Shown piece by piece: positions 30,052 through 40,104 of a DNA stretch of 64,000 nt. The stretch's first letter is position 1; each line of letters starts with the position of its first letter. Source of the DNA: Entomortierella parvispora E1425 (lineage: Eukaryota > Fungi > Mortierellomycota); NCBI GenBank assembly GCA_020891255.1, contig BQFW01000009.1, forward strand, positions 1,364,001-1,428,000, in the 5' to 3' direction. The position numbers and the translations under genes were made by a program. The notes beneath the pieces are model-generated. The model was not told the origin of the DNA. It made no database searches and saw nothing but the letters and a program-made list of their open reading frames with translations.

Positions 30052-32185
30052 TTAAAGAACCAGAACAACCATTGCCAACATCGCGCTCAGAGCGGCCCAA
30101 TTGCCCTTGAGGACCATGGCAGAGTTCTCGGACTTATCGCTTTTGGCCGAGGTTGCAGCGCTGACATCGACCTTCTCTGCCACTGAGCCACTGCTGCTGC
30201 TCTCGCTAGCACCACTGTTGCTGCTCTTGCTAACACCACTTTTGCTGATGGTTGATGACTTGTCGCCAGAGGTACCCTTGACACCTTGTTGGGCCACCAA
30301 ACCGTAAGGAGAACCCAACTCTGTCACGACATGATGCTCAATCTTGGTTGGGTCACCCGACACGGCCTTGAATCCCAAATCATTTTGGACCTGAGCCGAG
30401 CGTTTCTCGATCCAGTTGCGAAGACCCCAATCCATCTGAACACCCTTGTCCATTCCCTTGGAAAGATCTTGGATCGTGAACTTCTTGTTCTTGCCCTTGA
30501 GTGCCACTCTGGGCAAGGATCGATCCCATGCCACATCCTGCTCAATCATCTTCTTGTAGGCCTCCAAACGAGGAGTAACTGCATCGATCTTGAAGATGTA
30601 GTTGACAGTGTCCTTCAAGATCTCCTCGAATCGTTTGTTCATCTCTGGGGTCTCAATAATCAACTTCTGAGCCAAAGGAGATTCAAATCCATTCTCGTTG
30701 ATCTTCGGGATATTCTTGTAGGACTCGATTTTGCCTTCGAAAGAGGTACCAAAGGTATCATCAAAGTCGGTGGGAAGCCAGGTCCATTTACCAGTGACAG
30801 GATTGTTGTAGAACTGATAGTTTGAACCCGAGAGCCAGTAAGAGTCCCAAGAGCCGGTCAAGTATTCCATGGCCATGCTCTTGAGGAAAACCTCAAGATC
30901 GAGTCGCTCTTCCCAGTAAGCAATGGGATCCTTGACTTTCTTGGGATTATAGTTCTTGAGATCGGCCATGAACTTGATTAGATCCCGCATGGGATCATCC
31001 TTGGGGTTCGCGCCCAACAGGACGTTTTTGTAGATATCTCCAATGACATAGCTCTTAGAAGTGGGGCCCAACCATTGGAGGTTGCCCTCATGGCCACAGC
31101 AAGAGTTCATCTTCCAGAGGGCACCGAGCTTGGCTTTTTTAGAACGTGGGTGAAGTACTTTTTTGATCCAGTGTTTCTTCATTTCGTCCATTCCTACAAA
31201 GAGTCCAATGGGTTTACCGTTGAAGAACAGACGGACATAGGCAGCCTGTTGAGCAGGCACGCCCAGTGAGTTGAGCATATCCACATAGAGCTTCTCACGC
31301 ATTAGGGTCGCGTCTGTCTCTTCGTTACGAAGCTTGAGGGTTGAGAGGCCGAGGAGACGGTTCTTTTTTGGAAACTTGAATTGATACGCCAACTTAGCAT
31401 ACTCACGAGCGGATTTACCCGAGAGATTGAAGATGACATCGTTGATACGGACGTTTTCATTGGCGCTACGGAGTGAGTCGAGATTTGGGAACCAGGAACA
31501 TTAGAAGACAACCAAAAAAGAAAAAAAAAAGCGCATCCCACTGTTGTGAGGCAAGCCATGTTACCCAATGTACTGGATCTTGACTTTGATAGGTTTTGGA
31601 TAGAAATCTCCTCCTCCCGTGTTGATGAAGTTGATATTGGCGGGATCTCCTTCTACAAAGATATTTCCAATATAACCTTCTCTGAAGAAAGGCGAGTTTT
31701 GTTGCAGCTTGTTTTTATAGACTTGAGGGAACGGAGGCAGAGCATGCAAAGTGTTGGGTCGATCAAAAAAGTCATTTGGCGTATGCGATGCGCCCTCGGG
31801 TAATTGACGAGCTTCCTTTTCCTTCTTCACTTTTCCAGATGCTTCCAGACGGACAAAGGTGTACTTAAGCGGAGCCTCAGCACTGGTCACCTTTGCGGAC
31901 CAAAGTGGATAAGCGGTCTTGGAGGTGGTGAGCTTGGTGAGTCGGCCATTGATCAACACTCCAAATTCATCGCTATCTTTCTCGCGAAGGCCCACAACGT
32001 TGAATGTCACTAGCACGAAAAAAGCGGAAGAAGAGAGAGAGATGTCCATAAGACAGTAGGCACAATTCTCGCAGGTGTTGAGTTGACGCGAACCCTTGGT
32101 TTTCCTCCATTTCGCCGAGTTTTTTTTTACCATCGGCCATGGCCGTTGCAGCACATGCTGCCAACCCGAGTATAAGGCGAACCAT
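30052..32185 (-). CDS. cotH: CotH-family secreted kinase/spore coat protein with C-terminal GPI signal, ~637 aa, 3 exons
   Basis: Exons 32185-32131, 32009-31565, 31465-30052. Signal MVRLILGLAACAATAMA, LKLRNEETDATLMREKLY, YVRLFFNG..GLF, WDSYWLSGSNY, WLPTDFDDTFG, Ser-rich stalk, hydrophobic tail. Confidence 0.93.
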
Positions 32186-32524: not shown

Positions 32525-35500
32525 TCAGTCATCTTCGACATCAAGGTAGAGATCTCGGATCTCCTGGTGATCCAGTCGGCGCTCTTGCTGCATTTCCAAA
32601 AGACCCCTGATCACCTCTTGCGCGCCCATATCTTGGATCTCGTCAATCTTTGAAATTTGCTGCTGCAGTTGCGATCGAATCTTGTCATGAGTCTTTGCCT
32701 GATCCAAATCAAACGCGTCCTCTTCTTCATCCTCTTGAATAGGAGCAGGGGTTTCAAGACCAGCCATCGCCTTCTTGTGTTCGCCAAGCTTGCGCAACGC
32801 GTCTTCATCCGAGGTAAACATAGGTTGGCAGGTATGAAGTTCATAGATGATCTGACCCAAAGACCACATATCCATCGTTGGAAGAGCTGTCAGCTTTTCA
32901 ATTGGCTCCCCATTGGACGAGGTGGAGATGGAAGTGGAGCTACTGCTGGCAGAAGTCTTGATCTCTGTCCGTGTTATGGTACCATCGGATTTCTTCACAG
33001 TCTCAAAGACCGCATCTCTGTTCGGGTTCTCCACATCAGCCTGAATCGCCTGACGAGCTAGTCTCTTTTGGTAACGGCGGCAAGGAATCAAGACCTCAGG
33101 GGAAGAATAGGCTGTTGTCTCCATGCCTAGATCAGCAGATTCTCCAATGAACCGAGCATGATTGAAGTTCCAAAGTTTCCAGCGCTGTTCAACCTTTGGC
33201 GCAAGGCCATCAGATGATGTCCTGATAGAATAGGTCGAGTAAGTAGAGGCACGATATCCGCCTTGACCGTCTGGCTCAGAGTAGACCTCTTGCAAAATGA
33301 TACTTGAAGGCGAAAGGTTGAGATGAACAACATGATGGTCGTGGCACCACTTGACAGCTGATGCAACGCTATCTGTCAGCGCTTTCAGTTCTAGCAGCGT
33401 CATTGGCCCCTGTCGTGCGAGAACCTCATCGCTTGGAGTGGCGGGTGGGATGATACCCTTTCGCACTCTAATGTACGACTCCAGAGTACGAGTGAATGGT
33501 CCCATTACAGACACGAACCGGTATTCGGAAGAGGGTGGCAAGGTGTAGAGTGTAAAGAGCTCCACAATATGCTTTTCCTGTGCCAAATGTTGAAGCATAC
33601 CCGCCTCTCGTTTCCATTGGAACTCGTTCTTCATCCACCGGAGAGATTGTTCTCGGGGCTCGGATTCAGTGTTTAAACCAGCACCACTAGGTCCGGGAAC
33701 AACAGGCGAAGGCAGACCTTGTTCTTGTCCTGTGATCTTGGACGAGTCCCGGACGTGAGAGTAAGCAGAGCCTGCGATGTGGATATCTTTGGCACCCTCA
33801 ATCATCTCGACTTGAGAGAACATGAGAGTTCCGGGCTTGGCATCAGGCGTGGCTTTACCGGCATCGGAGCGTTCGTAACGGACAATGCTCAGTTTGAGGG
33901 TGATCTGGGTCTTCGTCGACGAAGTGGCCACCTGTGGTGCACCCTGCTGGACAATCACTCGTTGCTGCTGCTGCTGTTGCTGTGTTTGAGTTAGAACTCC
34001 TCCAGCAGCCATGGTTCCTACAACAACCATTCCTTCAAGGAGATGCGCAGGAAGAGCCGACGAGGAAGAGGATGTTGCCATCGTCGTGGTCATGGTAGTT
34101 GTTTTCTTTCCGGACTTGATCACTGTCTGACTGCTGTTGCTTCCACCAGGTGCTCCTCCATTTTGACTAGAGATCGATGAGCTAGAGGTTGAACTTCCAA
34201 AAGCAAGGGACGAGGTTGAGGTGTTTCCGCCCGACACTACCATGCCGGCACTGGCATTGCTCATTAAGCGACTATGGCCCTGCACGTCGTCGTCCAAGAC
34301 CTCCTGAGACGCAGAGCGAAGGATCTCCTGTGTCTCTCCAGACTGAATAACATTGGGTCCAGGTCTCGTTCCTGATATCGTTTTTGTCGTGGTAGTTGTG
34401 GTTGTGGTTGTGGTTTTGGTGACCCCACCTTCGGTAGTTGTTGTCTTGGTGACCCCTCCCTTGGTGGTGCTGGTGGAACTACCCTCAGCAGTGGTGACTG
34501 AGGTAACCTTGGACGATTCTGCAGACGAGGAATGGTGAGCGGCAATAACAGCTGCACCGGCTGCACCCGCAATCATTGCTCCACCGATCATAGCTGCGTC
34601 ACCAGAGGCAAATACACCGTTGTTTTCATGCTCCTCTCTTGGGATCACTTCCACCGATTCAGCCTCGTCATCTGGCTTGTCCTGCTCGATCTTTGTACTA
34701 ATGGCATCGGTTGTGATTGACATCACAGGAACTGGGGGAACCGCTGTTGTCGGACTTGGCGGGGCGCTGCGACGAGGAGGACCACTGTAGTCTCTTCCGC
34801 TCATAAAGAACTTTGTTGAAGTCCTCTTGGCCGCCAAAAGTGCACTCTGGTTCAGGCTCTCGGTCGATGAGTCCCCATGAGTGGCGTGGCCAGCTCCAAA
34901 GACTTGCTCCGTGCTGCTCTGGGCTGGAGCAGGTCGTAGTTGGATCGACTCCTTGCGGCGGTGCCGTTCAGCAATAGAGCCAGCGACAACAACCACAGCT
35001 CCAGCTGCAGCAATGCCTGAGAGAATGGCTCCTCCATTGCCAGCACCGGAGCCGGCAGCAGCAGTTAATTCAGTGCTTCCTTCGCGGGGGATGATGTACT
35101 CTCCGTCAGTCGACGAACCAGCACCTCCAGAGGCACCGCCCATTCCTCCAGCCAATGGAGTCAAGCCTGGAATGTTGGTGTCTCCACCTCCTGGTGCGCC
35201 TGGATACTTGGCCTCGGGCCCTCCTGTTGGACCGGCAATAGTTCCATCAGGACCGTACGTTCCTGCACCACCTAAGTAGCCATCGTCAGGGCCCGCTGCA
35301 CCGTACTCTCCAGCAGCTGCTGCACCCTCTGCGGCGTTCGCTCGTTCACGTTTCCTCTTGACGAGAATGAAGAGCAAGGAGACAAGCGCGATCAAGGCCA
35401 CGACACCAAACAACCCACCAAGAATGGCGCTCGTATTAGCATGGGACGAATCGCCGACTTTTGCGCCGCTTGGACCCGGTCCGACACCGCCGTTGGTTGG

Positions 35501-38402
35501 AAGAGCCGATCCGGTGGCCGTTGCATTCGCTCCAACAAGGACTTGACCTGTCGGCTGTGCATCAGGATTTGGGAAAGGAGCGTTGGGACTGATGGCTCCT
35601 GGGACGCCATTTGGAATCGTACCAGGGGGGAAACCTGAAGAAGGTGTCCAGGATCCACCTGAGCTTGTTCCTCCAGAGCCTCCAGAACCAGATACTTCAG
35701 AACCCCCAGAACCAGATCCTCCAGAACCTCCAGAACCAGAACCTCCAGAGCCAGAGCCTCCAGAACCTCCAGAACCAGAACCTCCAGAACCAGAACCTCC
35801 AGAACCTCCAGAATCAGAACCTCCAGAACCAGAACCTCCAGAACCAGTACCTCCAGAACCAGAGCCTCTAGAACCGCCAGAACCAGAGCCGCCTGATCCT
35901 CCAGAGTCAGAACTTTCTGAATCAGATCCTCCAGAACCAGATCCTCCAGAACCAGATCCTCCAGAGCCAGAGCCTCCGGAACCAGAGCCTCCTGATCCTC
36001 CAGAGTCAGAACCAGATCTGCCAGATCCACCAGATCCTTCAGAGCCAGATCCACCAGATCCACCAGATCCTTCAGAGCCAGATCCACCAGATCCACCAGA
36101 TCCTTCAGAGCCGGATCCACCAGAACTTCCAAAGCCAGATCTGCCGGAGCCTCCAGAGCCGGATCCACCAGAACTTCCAAAGCCAGATCTGCCGGAGCCT
36201 CCAGAACCAGATCTACCAGAGCCTCCAGAACCAGATCTGCCAGATCCCCCAGAGACAAAGCCGCCAGATCCTCCAGATCCTCCAGACCCTCCAGGCCCTC
36301 CAGACCCTCCAAATCCTCCAGAGCCAACGATAATAATGCCACCGGTGCCAAGGCCGCCGCTTTCGTTGCCATTGTTGCCTTCGCCGTTATTGTGATCGTC
36401 TTCGTTATCATCATCGTTATCATCGTCGTCATCATCATCGTCATCTTCGTCGTTGCCGTAGCCGGGTCTGAAGATGGCCACGGGAGCCGATCCGGAAACT
36501 TCGCCTTCTTCGCCAGCTTGAAGGTTCGTGCTGCAATCCTCAGCCTTGTCGCAACTGCCATAGACAATGATTCCATCTCCACAACTGGCACAGGTCAATC
36601 CTCCTGGAGTAGGGCCTCCCTGCGATTGAGCAGCGATTATATAAGATTCAGACCCATCTTTGTGCGAAGTGTCGATGCTCCAGACACCAACTCCCTTGTC
36701 ATTCTAGAAGCAAGGGAATGGCAGAAACGCATTAGACGTGACTAAAAAAAAAAAAAAAGGAAAAAAAAACCTAGATGTTCACCTTTCCAAATATAAAGAG
36801 TTGGCCGCCAAAATACACAGCGCGAGGATGCTCAACCTCCAAGTTGGGCAAGGTATGGAAGCCAATCCTGCCACCACCGTTCTCATCATCCTTGTGATCC
36901 TCCAACTGGGATGGGTAGACGATATCAAAGGGGATATCGCGCGGGCGATCGGCTATGGAGATGTCGAACCACCCAGAGCCCTGGGGTCCAAAGAGGAACA
37001 GAGTCGTGTTGTCGCAGCGGCTTCCGTGGTCGCCCTTTTGCTTGTACTTCTTGGGGGCACTCTGGTGGGTGTAGTGGTTTGGATTCAGGGGCGAGGCCAC
37101 CAGGGTGATGTCGGAGGGCAGGATGCCATGACTGTTGTATCGTTGGGATAGTTTTTTTTAGGGCAAAGGAGGCAGAGAGCGGGCGGAATGTCAAAAGGGG
37201 AGAGGAAAAAAATAGGAAGAGGCAAGGCGGAAACGAGATGAATAAAGGGGCGCAGATCACAGCGGATAAAAATACCAAAAAAAAAGGGACTCTTCAGAAG
37301 AGGTGTAACTGCAGTAACTGCATCGCAATTAGTAACCCAGAAGTTTTGCCTGCAACTTACCCAATCTTGATATCATGGCAAGAGTTGATTTGATGGTTCA
37401 CGAGTTGGATTCCTGTGAGGTGGTCGCGTTCATTCTGGTCCTTCCACTGAATCACGATCGTGTCCAGAGCTTCCTCCTTGTCTCGCCCGGTACCCTCTCG
37501 TCTCTTTGCACGGTAGGATTGATAGACGAGGGCGAATCGATTCGGGTACTCGAACCTCAATTTCTTTTCATCCTTCTTCACCTTGACTTCACCGGTCGCG
37601 TCTTCAATCTCTTGTTCGTGACAGGAGCAAGGTCGATCAACTCGAACGTGACTCCAGATTCTCGCTTCGTGATCCCAAATCGAGAACCCAGCCTCGCCGC
37701 CATCATGATCGTACGCAGGGACCATAAAGAAGTGATCCGAGCTCAAGAAGCAATGTTCAGTGTCAAACCAGCGACCCTCATGAGCCTCTCCTCCGGGATA
37801 GGGCAACGAGGTCCAATGTGCGTGCTGCCAATCAAAACCTGATTCCTTGTCCAGATTTTCATCGTGCCATTGTTCTTCATCACTCGAGGCCTTGCCACGT
37901 TTCTTGTTATCGTCGCAGGCCTCGGTCGAATTGATAAAATTGAAGACCAAGGTGCTATTGGAATCGTAACCGATCATAAAAGTACGGCCGTGGAATTTAT
38001 CCACCACCAGACATTGTCTTTGGAGGACAGGCGGGGGCTCTGCATGCCACCGTTTTTGAAGTGTAGGAGCTGTGCAGCGTGCATGTTAGATGGTGTGAAA
38101 AAAGATAACGATAGGTGGGAATCAAAAGGTTTTTTTAAAAAAACAACGCAACGCGAGCAATGCGCGTCATTGAGTGAAAGAAAAAACGGGGAGATGGTGG
38201 TGTTCATGGTCAGTCCAAAGTGCCTGTATTATGTTGGTGTAGCACAAGGGAATAAAAAATAAGGATGAAACGATGGAGAGAGAGACTTGCCTTTGATAGA
38301 AACTGCGTCGACGGCGATCCAATGGACAAGACATTGGAGGAGAGAGAAGACGAGTAGAAAAGAGGCCACCTTGGCGGCAGAGCGAACATGGCGGTCGCTC
38401 AT
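32525..38402 (-). CDS. Receptor-like single-pass membrane protein with C-terminal pseudokinase domain, ~1,782 aa, 4 exons
   Basis: Exons 38402-38291, 38069-37361, 37131-36783, 36703-32525 join in phase (5,349 nt). Signal peptide, TM AILGGLFGVVALIALVSLLFILV-KRKR (35428-35360), kinase-like subdomains VVHLNLSPSSI, KLWNFNHAR, TTAYSSPE, DMWSLGQIIYEL. Confidence 0.82.
35650..36325 (-). repeat. Coding GGSGS/GGSGSG repeat tract (~225 aa) with nested 15-, 24- and 36-nt units
   Basis: Plus strand shows ccagaacc(t)/ccagatcc arrays; ccagatccttcagagcc(a/g)gatccacc occurs three times around 36030-36120. Confidence 0.9.
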
Positions 38403-39624
38403 ATTAGTGTACGGTGCGGTGTGAAAAAGTGAAGAGAAGAACAAGCAAAAGCAAGAAAAATCAGGGCAGAGTAATATGGCAGGAAAAAAAGGGTTACGAC
38501 GTTGGAGGGGTTGGTGTTTTTGGGGATGTTTCCTATGACCCTCGGGCGTGATTGAATCAAATAAACAGGGTTGGTGTGCTGTGAGATCGCCGAAGAGTGG
38601 GGCGTGTGCAACGGAGAGCTTGGCGTGGACGAGAATGTCGGGTGTAAAGAGTTGTAAAGTCGAAGAATCAAGTGTCTTTGTCAGGCATAATAGACTGTCA
38701 TCCAAGGAATGGCCTAGACTGTGCAGTTTGCAGGACGGACAATTGAAAAAAAAAGAGATGAACGAGATGAAGGGAAAAGAAGGGAAAGGAAGGCAAAGGA
38801 AAAGGAAAGATCGTGGTGTCAGTTGCGAATGCAAGAGACAAATGGTGAGAATGGTTGAAAGGAGGAAAAAAAAGAGGAGAGAAAGAGAACGGCAGCGGAG
38901 GGATTGAAGGACCATGAAAAAAGCGACGTGGTTCAAGTGCTCAGAAAAAAAAAACGGGAGGACACTGCCGGGTCGCCGTCCCTGGTTGGCAGATGGACAG
39001 AGGCGCAACAGTAACCATGGATGGGCAAGAGGGTCCCTGAATTGTTGCGCTTGCAAACACTACGGACATGTCTCCTTGGATTTGCCCCGTTATTTTGGCC
39101 ATGCCTTTCTTTTTTTTTTTTTCCTCTTTCCCATACCACCTCCTTGAACTTTTCGTTTTTCCTCGCAGCGAGAGAATTTCCATTTCTTTCTGGCAAATAC
39201 ATAGGGGCCAATCTAGTCCCGATGAAAGAGGCTGGCGCGTGTGGCACCATGGACGAGACGGCGGCGAGGCGGACGAGGAATAGAGTGGCTGAGATGAAGC
39301 AAGGGGCTCCAGTGAATGCGAGCTTGATATTCACATTTTCTAGGTCGATTTGACCAATCAGCGCCAGAACGCCTGTTGTGGACAACAAACAATACAACGT
39401 GACAGCATGTTTCCCTGGAGAAATAGCTGTCAGAGCCGACCAGCCAGCCTGTCTATGGCATCATGTGCAACCTGCGGCAAAGCCACCCAATGCACTGCCC
39501 AAAACTCGCGACGCCAGCCCCTCGCAGCCACTCGTTTTCGACGTCTAATTTCATCTCTTTTCTCATTTTAGTTCCACTCACGCACCCTCTCCTTCCCCTC
39601 TTCCCACACCACAAAGTCGAAACC

Positions 39625-40104
39625 ATGACCATTACCCTCACTTCCCTCGACAACCAAGAGTTCAAGGTCGACAAGGAGGTCGCCGAGCGCTCGATCCTCA
39701 TCAAGAACATGATTGAGGATGTCGGCGAGTCTGATGCCCCCATCCCCTTGCCTAACGTGTCCGCCGCTGTGTTGACCAAGGTGATTGAGTACTGCGAGCA
39801 CCACCGTAACGATCCCGTCCAGGTCCAGGACGAGACCGACGACCCCCGCAAGCGCTCGAACGATATCGAGGAGTGGGACATGAAGTTTATGCAGGTTGAC
39901 CAGGAGATGCTCTTTGAGATCATCTTGGCCGCCAACTACTTGGACATCAAGCCCCTCTTGGACGTTGGCTGCAAGACTGTTGCCAACATTATCAAGGGAA
40001 AGACCCCGGAGGAGATCCGTAAGGCCTTCAACATCGTCAACGACTTCACGCCCGAGGAGGAGGCTCAGATTAAGAAGGAGAACGAGTGGGCAGAGGACCG
40101 TTAA
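39625..40104 (+). CDS. SKP1: SCF ubiquitin ligase adaptor Skp1 (159 aa), intronless
   Basis: [81 protein letters not shown]-like end. Confidence 0.98.

Follow-up and report, generated by a model that had tools for sequence, protein, structure and literature searches.

A gene on the minus strand (38402-32525) of a 64,000-nucleotide (nt) stretch of the Entomortierella parvispora E1425 genome (GenBank assembly GCA_020891255.1, contig BQFW01000009.1, positions 1,364,001 to 1,428,000) was analysed. The whole stretch is called the window below, and its first letter is position 1. The product of the gene is probably a type I single-pass receptor-like membrane protein with a beta-propeller outside and a scaffolding pseudokinase inside. 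A signal-peptide-like N-terminus, an ectodomain, a long stalk, one membrane helix followed by basic residues, a low-complexity linker and a kinase fold with replaced catalytic residues follow one another in the same protein.

Fungi are usually described as lacking receptor kinases. Fungal sensing is taught with G protein-coupled receptors, histidine kinases and wall-stress sensors, not with single-pass receptor kinases. The gene and its relatives suggest a lineage-specific family with the full receptor-kinase layout in two Mucoromycota subphyla. The members would be candidates for the perception of external cues by these soil-dwelling and symbiotic fungi, which are of ecological importance. 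The family would also supply a natural and independent case in which a receptor kinase became a receptor pseudokinase.

Ectodomain, stalk and membrane helix

The ectodomain was modelled with AlphaFold on the orthologue P0002 (residues 1-470, 71% identical, 20-row alignment), because the window's own ectodomain is split over exons. The model is all-beta with about 27 strands and a predicted template-modelling score (pTM) of 0.76. Its Foldseek matches are propellers of several kinds with template-modelling (TM) scores of 0.3-0.47. Its language-model neighbours belong to clusters of Kelch proteins, including a cluster of Mucoromycota, and their scores of 0.87-0.88 are leads only. It was concluded from the model that the ectodomain is a predicted six-bladed beta-propeller. 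A propeller-like fold had been suggested in a first-pass annotation, which a model made from the sequence alone, and the AlphaFold model and the fold searches support it.

Pfam at E <= 10 gave no match for five of six family ectodomains, and the sixth matched only Kelch_1 with E = 1.1. When phmmer was run exhaustively on 1.84 billion representatives, the ectodomain had 18 matches, none of them from any other family. The profile search with the ectodomain alignment (A2) returned 34 matches; those that are named all come from Mortierellaceae, and none has a Pfam domain. The ligand of a sequence family without detectable relatives beyond Mortierellaceae would be new information. The three N-glycosylation sequons of the ectodomain are N75, N84 and N315, two of which lie within conserved blocks.

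The positions of the features (Table 1) were obtained from hydrophobicity scans and direct reading of the sequence. The hydrophobic N-terminus, the LQKR motif, the acidic run, the Gly/Ser linker and the helix followed by KRKR were each found where the first-pass annotation had placed them, and so were the low-complexity region, the kinase motifs and the two additional Ala/Gly/Val segments. The comparison used two relatives, L001 (Gryganskiella DNA) and L002 (a metagenome contig with 92% protein identity in the kinase), and the runs X1 (the source assembly), X2 (a related strain) and X3 (a low-depth run of the same sample). The N-terminal hydrophobic segment is conserved in L002, and the other complete orthologue models also carry one upstream of KRWH. 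The L-x-K-R motif is conserved across the orthologue group, with G-K instead in the only complete paralogue N-terminus. Kex2-type cleavage at this motif is possible, not compelling. The acidic patch is acidic in most orthologues and absent from the paralogue group. The DNA of the Gly/Ser stalk consists of imperfect tandem repeats of 9-48 nt, and the stalk length differs from that of X2 by insertions or deletions (indels) that are all multiples of 3, which resembles the behaviour of a coding minisatellite.

The main helix has a Kyte-Doolittle value of 2.96 and an estimated insertion energy of -3.8 kcal/mol (-2.6 to -5.0 kcal/mol in the family). The energies were estimated in 19-residue windows with the Hessa biological hydrophobicity scale, whose values are approximate. 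Because the conserved Cys residues and N-x-S/T sequons sit N-terminal of the main helix and all members of the family have basic residues directly after it, the simplest reading of the topology would be type I, with the propeller out and the kinase in.

The protein could also be a lumenal sensor of the endoplasmic reticulum, Golgi or vacuole with an Ire1- or PERK-like layout, and not a cell-surface receptor. A signal peptide, one helix and a cytosolic kinase fold are compatible with any secretory membrane, and Ire1 is generally known as the classic fungal single-pass kinase. However, Pfam shows neither an RNase/KEN domain nor an Ire1-like lumenal domain in the window protein. The stalk of about 340 residues (acidic, Gly/Ser-rich and Pro-rich) may be comparable to the stalks with which fungal surface sensors span the wall. 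Moreover, the ectodomain has conserved glycosylation sequons and a dibasic site of a type common in late-secretory processing. A lumenal sensor is considered unlikely on this evidence.

Kinase fold and catalytic positions

The C-terminal domain matches Pfam Pkinase (PF00069) with E = 3.7e-12. Its score of 46.6 bits exceeds the curated cut-off of 31.7, and its orthologues score 34-46 bits. Snf1/AMPK, TSSK and BRSK match best by sequence among solved structures, and HRDLKPEN of Snf1 aligns with HLNLSPSS of the window protein. The AlphaFold model of the domain, made with 27 family sequences, has a pTM of 0.72 and low-confidence parts only in inserts. Foldseek against the PDB gave at least 500 matches at E <= 0.001. 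All of the 50 matches listed are protein kinases (TM by target 0.55-0.71), and the best ones are CLK1, Pho85 and ULK1. The kinase fold recognised in the first-pass annotation is therefore supported as a prediction, and its start was moved from 33660 to near 33922.

The motifs were aligned in 35 Mortierellaceae sequences and one Glomeromycotina sequence, and then in six family representatives and 16 Glomeromycotina sequences. The positions of the beta3 Lys, HRD Asp, catalytic-loop Asn and DFG Asp are occupied in the window protein by R, N, S and N, respectively. None of these four residues of a catalytically competent kinase is present, and only the alphaC Glu is retained. The replacement of catalytic motifs (here HLNLSPSS and NFN), which had been noticed in this gene alone, holds across the family in the alignments, as does the retention of the APE-like motif (here SPE) and of DxWSxG (here DMWSLG). 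A VAIK motif had been reported as not clear; its equivalent was identified as SLRWMK, with Arg at the Lys position in most orthologues. Thus, the domain is a predicted kinase fold that lacks the VAIK-Lys, HRD-Asp and DFG-Asp and is yet conserved, which is the operational description of a pseudokinase. The domain is predicted to be a pseudokinase that can no longer perform the standard phosphotransfer mechanism. The catalytic-base position would have no chemical role, because the residue there varies freely among orthologues.

An insert in the N-lobe (SHVRDSSK.TG.E.GLPSPVVPGPSGA, about 33763-33680 on the minus strand) has a predicted local distance difference test score (pLDDT) below 50. It is predicted to be disordered and is nearly invariant among orthologues. 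The insert could be a docking or phosphorylation site.

The domain might instead be an atypical but active kinase with non-canonical phosphotransfer, which would make the protein a genuine receptor kinase. The fold of the domain and its alphaC Glu, APE-like motif, DxWSxG and C-lobe Arg are retained, and no other part of the protein is as strongly constrained. The paralogues retain the beta3 Lys, and six aligned orthologues, mainly Linnemannia, retain the DFG Asp. WNK and CASK are general precedents which show that the loss of motifs need not mean inactivity. However, a catalytic-base position that is unfixed (N, S, G, C) is hard to square with catalysis. The loss of the loop Lys coincides with that of the loop Asn and, in most cases, that of the DFG Asp. 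A glycine-rich loop is missing, and the stem of the Mortierellaceae kinases is very long at 1.77 changes per site. Retained activity is therefore regarded as decidedly unlikely, and the pseudokinase is preferred.

The predicted cytoplasmic linker between the helix and the pseudokinase measures about 470 residues, not about 550 as estimated at first, and contains no conserved motif at >=70% over 12 residues. Two Gly/Ala-rich hydrophobic segments lie in it; such segments recur through the family and are glycine-zipper-like. If they spanned the membrane, the protein would be multi-pass, and the kinase would be outside or the linker would be a membrane-embedded bundle. The mean Kyte-Doolittle value is 2.2 for the segment at residues 949-967 and 1.9 for that at residues 1093-1112. 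These values, their family-wide recurrence and the basic residues after them fit that picture. On the other hand, their estimated insertion energy is unfavourable, at +0.9 to +2.5 kcal/mol versus -2.6 to -5.0 kcal/mol for the main helix. Relatives have between 0 and 4 such segments, and if all of them spanned the membrane, a conserved kinase would switch sides between species. An extracellular kinase fold would also have no supply of adenosine triphosphate. Given these marginal energies and changing numbers, the segments do not appear to be spans that the protein requires. The change of topology that the first-pass annotation had considered is hence unlikely, and a multi-pass protein has little to recommend it against the single-pass, type I layout.

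Gene model and selection

The four exons, all in phase, were proposed in the first-pass annotation to encode about 1,782 residues. The joined coding sequence is 5,349 nt long and encodes exactly 1,782 residues with zero internal stops. Upstream of the largest frame lie three shorter open stretches, and the splice sites that join them to it were located by reading the sequence and with a script. Exon 4 is one uninterrupted frame of 1,392 codons and a stop (the open reading frame, ORF, is listed as 32525-36598 and is open back to 36703).

The three junctions are at identical codon positions in L001 and L002. The donor of intron 1 is GCAAGT in the window and GTAAGC at the same position in L002, and the acceptor is shared with L002. 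AG/GCAAGT, with the slash at the splice site, is a strong donor context typical of GC-AG introns. The exon 1 protein is 94.6% identical with that of L002, and the acceptor gcacag/CTCC preserves the frame of the conserved L-x-K-R-W-H-x-E-P-P-P block. An in-phase alternative acceptor of exon 2 at 38039 was rejected because it would delete the L-x-K-R-W-H block of every complete orthologue. The junction of exons 2 and 3 (...SCHDIKI-G-HGILPS...) agrees with the orthologue proteins, and that of exons 3 and 4 (...IFGK-NDKGVGVW...) with all orthologues. The donors and acceptors of introns 2 and 3 are kept in both L001 and L002.

Between X2 and the window, all of the exon 4 indels are multiples of 3. 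The indels not divisible by 3 are confined to predicted introns, namely one of 4 nt at 38129 (intron 1) and three of 1 nt at 37184, 37277 and 37296 (intron 2). The 4-nt insertion of X2 at 38129 would disrupt a coding frame. The predicted splice model is supported by conserved junctions, protein colinearity and the indel patterns in relatives.

At least six independent gene models (P0002, P0006, P0012, P0014, P0019 and P0021) unite the ectodomain and the kinase. They come from Gryganskiella, Entomortierella, Podila, Lobosporangium, Actinomortierella and a Mortierella species. With these models of other species and the single frame of exon 4, the assignment of both ends to one gene is supported. 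Exon 4 carries the last propeller strands as well as the kinase, and two separate genes would require a break within an intact 4.2-kilobase frame.

The ratio of nonsynonymous to synonymous substitution rates (dN/dS) was determined by the Nei-Gojobori method between the window and L002. The kinase domain, with 0.06 (0.045 in its core), is under the strongest constraint in the protein. The ectodomain has 0.093, and the stalk and linker have 0.17. The short signal/pro region has 0.26, and all other segments have 0.05-0.17. In the kinase region, 33 of the 39 listed substitutions between X2 and the window are at third codon positions. The pattern indicates that the gene is functional and under purifying selection.

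That two genes or a decaying pseudogene were falsely joined is hardly credible: the non-canonical GC donor of intron 1 and a prokaryote-style gene caller that broke the same locus into pieces on the metagenome contig would suit it, but the 1,392-codon frame runs from the propeller through the kinase, the junctions are conserved, the independent annotations unite both ends, and dN/dS stays at 0.05-0.17 in every segment except the signal/pro region.

The public models P0023, P0034 and P0012 start at an internal Met (MTYM... or MIGYDS...), without the signal-peptide exon and the KRWH block. Many other family entries are flagged as partial, and public annotations of the propeller-pseudokinase family are systematically truncated.

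Table 1. Exons, introns, protein segments and kinase motifs of the gene (window positions; a slash marks a splice site).
Feature	Position	Strand	Residues	Remarks
Exon 1	38402-38291	-	1-37	ATG at 38402; predicted signal peptide; phase 1 end; donor AAAG/GCAAGT
Intron 1	38290-38070	-		221 nt, GC-AG; acceptor gcacag/CTCC
Exon 2	38069-37361	-		LQKR and first propeller part; donor ATTGG/GTAAGT; colinear with orthologue proteins
Intron 2	37360-37132	-		229 nt, GT-AG; donor ATTGG/GTAAGT, acceptor acaacag/T
Exon 3	37131-36783	-		middle propeller blades; donor GGAAAG/GTGAAC
Intron 3	36782-36704	-		79 nt, GT-AG; donor GGAAAG/GTGAAC, acceptor ttctag/AATGAC
Exon 4	36703-32525	-		includes stop; last propeller strands, stalk, membrane helix, linker, pseudokinase
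Signal-peptide-like N-terminus		-	1-33	basic n-region; hydrophobic core within 12-30 (15-19 residues)
LQKR	38061-38050	-	41-44	possible Kex2-type site
Ectodomain	38049-36449	-	45-475	spans introns 2 and 3; 11 Cys, 3 N-glycosylation sequons
Acidic (poly-Asp) patch	36448-36377	-	476-499
Gly/Ser-rich stalk	36376-35654	-	500-740	241 residues
Pro/Gly/Asn-rich stretch		-	741-816	precedes membrane helix
Predicted membrane helix ILGGLFGVVALIALVSLLFILV, then KRKRER	35425-35342	-	817-838 (helix)	helix of 22 residues
Low-complexity linker, predicted cytoplasmic	35341-33923	-	845-1317	about 470 residues
Gly/Ala-rich hydrophobic segment	35029-34973	-	949-967	then His/Arg/Lys
Gly/Ala-rich hydrophobic segment	34597-34538	-	1093-1112	then His/Arg/Lys
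Predicted pseudokinase domain	33922-32528	-	1318-1782
Glycine-rich loop				no GxGxxG
beta3 SLRWMK (VAIK equivalent)	33646-33629	-		Lys position: Arg in most orthologues, Lys in paralogues
alphaC Glu				retained
HLNLSPSS (HRDLKPEN position)	33325-33302	-		HRD Asp position: N, S, G or C throughout the 35 aligned Mortierellaceae sequences; loop Lys position: S/T, R in paralogues; loop Asn position: Ser
NFN (DFG position)	33169-33161	-		Asp position: Asn in most; Asp retained in six aligned orthologues, mainly Linnemannia
SPE (APE-like)	33103-33095	-		APE-like motif retained
DMWSLG	32872-32855	-		DxWSxG retained
C-lobe Arg				retained

Proposed role, relatives and neighbouring genes

We infer the topology, the surface location, the ligand and the scaffold role of the window protein as follows. 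The signal peptide would direct the N-terminus into the secretory pathway, and cleavage after the conserved LxKR may follow. The disulphide-rich six-bladed propeller would be displayed outside on a flexible acidic and Gly/Ser stalk, a layout that recalls the wall-spanning stalks of the fungal sensors Wsc1 and Mid2. The single helix with its basic stop-transfer would be followed by a disordered linker that leads to the dead kinase fold. The propeller may bind an extracellular or cell-wall ligand. A glycan is a possible guess because many extracellular six-bladed propellers are lectins or glycosidases. The pseudokinase would be a docking or allosteric module for cytosolic signalling partners, as receptor pseudokinases are in plants and animals.

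Several points weigh against this picture. The sequence searches gave the ectodomain no significant link to known ligand-binding families, and the ligand class is a guess for that reason. The signal peptide and the membrane helix were called by hydrophobicity scans and an approximate scale, not by dedicated predictors, and both AlphaFold models (kinase and ectodomain) are predictions with a mean pLDDT of 67-70. The predicted topology signals fit any membrane of the secretory pathway, plasma membrane or endomembrane. If the predicted GC donor of intron 1 is not spliced, the signal peptide would not be attached. The run search over the whole gene found no RNA run, and for the junction region it found three runs, all labelled DNA. 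A contig of X3 is unspliced through intron 3, and since the run is of low depth and labelled DNA it is uninformative on splicing. Finally, nucleotide binding remains conceivable because the paralogue group retains the beta3 Lys and the alphaC Glu, and some kinases without canonical residues, such as WNK and CASK, are still active.

Orthologues of the kinase region were found in about 20 Mortierellaceae species. A second Mortierellaceae group (paralogues P0022-P0035, about 30-45% identity) shares with the orthologues the ectodomain family, the membrane helix, the Gly/Ala segments and a dead centre of the HLN type. It differs in that the CSCHE insert and the acidic patch are absent, the beta3 Lys is present, and Arg replaces Ser/Thr in the catalytic loop. 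A paralogue-type protein of Modicella with a complete N-terminus (P0042) has a predicted signal peptide, so models that begin with MTYM... look truncated at the N-terminus. In the searches run, the ectodomain sequence family appeared only in Mortierellaceae, in two paralogue groups that are both "dead". Because both groups are dead, catalysis was probably lost before the duplication. In the search for an active Mortierellaceae member, three Podila proteins (P0082, P0083 and P0085) were rejected as cytosolic HCDLKPEN kinases (DYRK/YAK-like) without a membrane helix.

The sole match of the kinase region outside Mortierellaceae is a protein of Geosiphon. A search with this protein revealed a Glomeromycotina family in Gigaspora, Dentiscutata, Racocetra, Cetraspora, Acaulospora, Ambispora, Paraglomus and Geosiphon, so that the kinase family is known so far from two Mucoromycota subphyla. 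The Glomeromycotina members (P0036 and P0051-P0066, with P0036 from Geosiphon pyriformis and P0051 from Gigaspora margarita) are hypothetical proteins of about 1,000-1,100 residues. Most of their complete models have a signal-like N-terminus, a Pfam Kelch propeller of about 390 residues, a membrane helix with basic residues, and a kinase. The kinases retain the beta3 Lys, HLD, the loop Lys, the Asn and DFE (HLDIKPGN), and the proteins are apparently active receptor-type kinases of the non-RD class.

The window kinase scored 24-61 bits against the Glomeromycotina proteins (at least 49 in 11 of the 17) and less than 14 bits against the other fetched kinases. The signatures HL-x, W-K/R-L-x-x-F-x-x-A-R and RE-x-x-ML are common to both kinase families. 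A quick maximum-likelihood tree, rooted on few outgroup sequences, placed both families in one clade with a Shimodaira-Hasegawa-like approximate likelihood ratio test (SH-aLRT) value of 99, and the long branch of 1.77 changes per site is the stem of the Mortierellaceae clade. For the ectodomain profiles, the hhalign comparison of Mortierellaceae (A2) with Glomeromycotina (A3) gave a probability of 5% and E = 0.0076 over a colinear N-terminal stretch only. The hmmsearch of the two ectodomain families in either direction gave about 4 bits. Neither comparison is significant. A receptor class of early-diverging fungi had been suggested at first. Its scope is narrower in the searches run, where the ectodomain was restricted to Mortierellaceae and the detectable kinase relatives to Glomeromycotina.

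No description of either family was found in the full-text literature searched on fungal receptor kinases, Mortierella or Rhizophagus kinomes, Kelch-kinase fusions and Mucoromycota pseudokinases, which covers a minority of the subscription journals. For Glomeromycotina, only MLKL-like pseudokinases with Sel1 repeats are mentioned in PMC8778642.

As a tentative and rather doubtful extension, Mucoromycota may have evolved their own receptor-kinase family, a propeller joined to a non-RD kinase, independently of the plant receptor-like kinase (RLK)/Pelle family and the animal receptor tyrosine kinases. The family would be active in arbuscular mycorrhizal fungi and would have been converted once, before the duplication, into a conserved pair of receptor pseudokinases in Mortierellaceae, which would sense an extracellular or wall glycan and act as scaffolds. 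If this extension is true, the family is an unrecognised surface-signalling system in fungi.

The Glomeromycotina Kelch-membrane-kinase proteins share with the window protein the order of parts (signal peptide, propeller, helix, basic stop-transfer, kinase) and homologous kinase domains. However, they keep the catalytic residues that the window protein has lost, and their ectodomain is a Kelch propeller recognised by Pfam, whereas that of the window protein matches no Pfam family. They also lack the long Gly/Ser stalk and the 470-residue linker.

Plant receptor-like pseudokinases act as scaffolds or allosteric partners. Those of the RLK/Pelle family, generally known from BIR2 and the SOBIR type, resemble the predicted layout of the window protein: they are single-pass and of type I, and they have a binding domain outside the cell and a dead kinase fold in the cytosol. 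In contrast, the window ectodomain is a predicted propeller and not a leucine-rich repeat, LysM or malectin domain. No RLK, IRAK or tyrosine kinase chain is among the 60 sequence matches and 50 fold matches listed from the PDB. The window protein looks like an independent assembly of the same layout.

The fungal wall-stress sensors and signalling mucins Wsc1, Mid2 and Msb2 are also known to consist of a signal peptide, a small head domain, a long low-complexity stalk that could span the wall, one helix and a cytosolic tail to which signalling proteins are recruited. The stalk of the window protein differs from theirs in being Gly/Ser-rich and acidic, not Ser/Thr-rich, and its tail ends in a full kinase fold, which is missing from those sensors. 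No WSC or mucin-type Ser/Thr domain was detected in it with Pfam. Among fungal proteins, Ire1 is the one well-known case in which a single membrane pass is combined with a cytosolic kinase domain. The same combination is predicted for the window protein, whose kinase in contrast is catalytically degenerate. The KEN/RNase and lumenal domains of Ire1 are absent from the Pfam results, in which Pkinase is the sole match of exon 4 and the ectodomain has none.

A Skp1 gene lies head-to-head upstream at 39463-40104 on the plus strand (Pfam Skp1 2.7e-28, Skp1_POZ 3.3e-26). The Skp1 neighbour is also upstream in L001 and L002, and the locus is thus syntenic. Downstream, an ORF of 197 residues at 31561-32154 on the minus strand has a weak, sub-cut-off match with the starch-binding domain CBM_20 (E = 0.015, 15.5 bits). 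This ORF is probably one exon of a larger gene.

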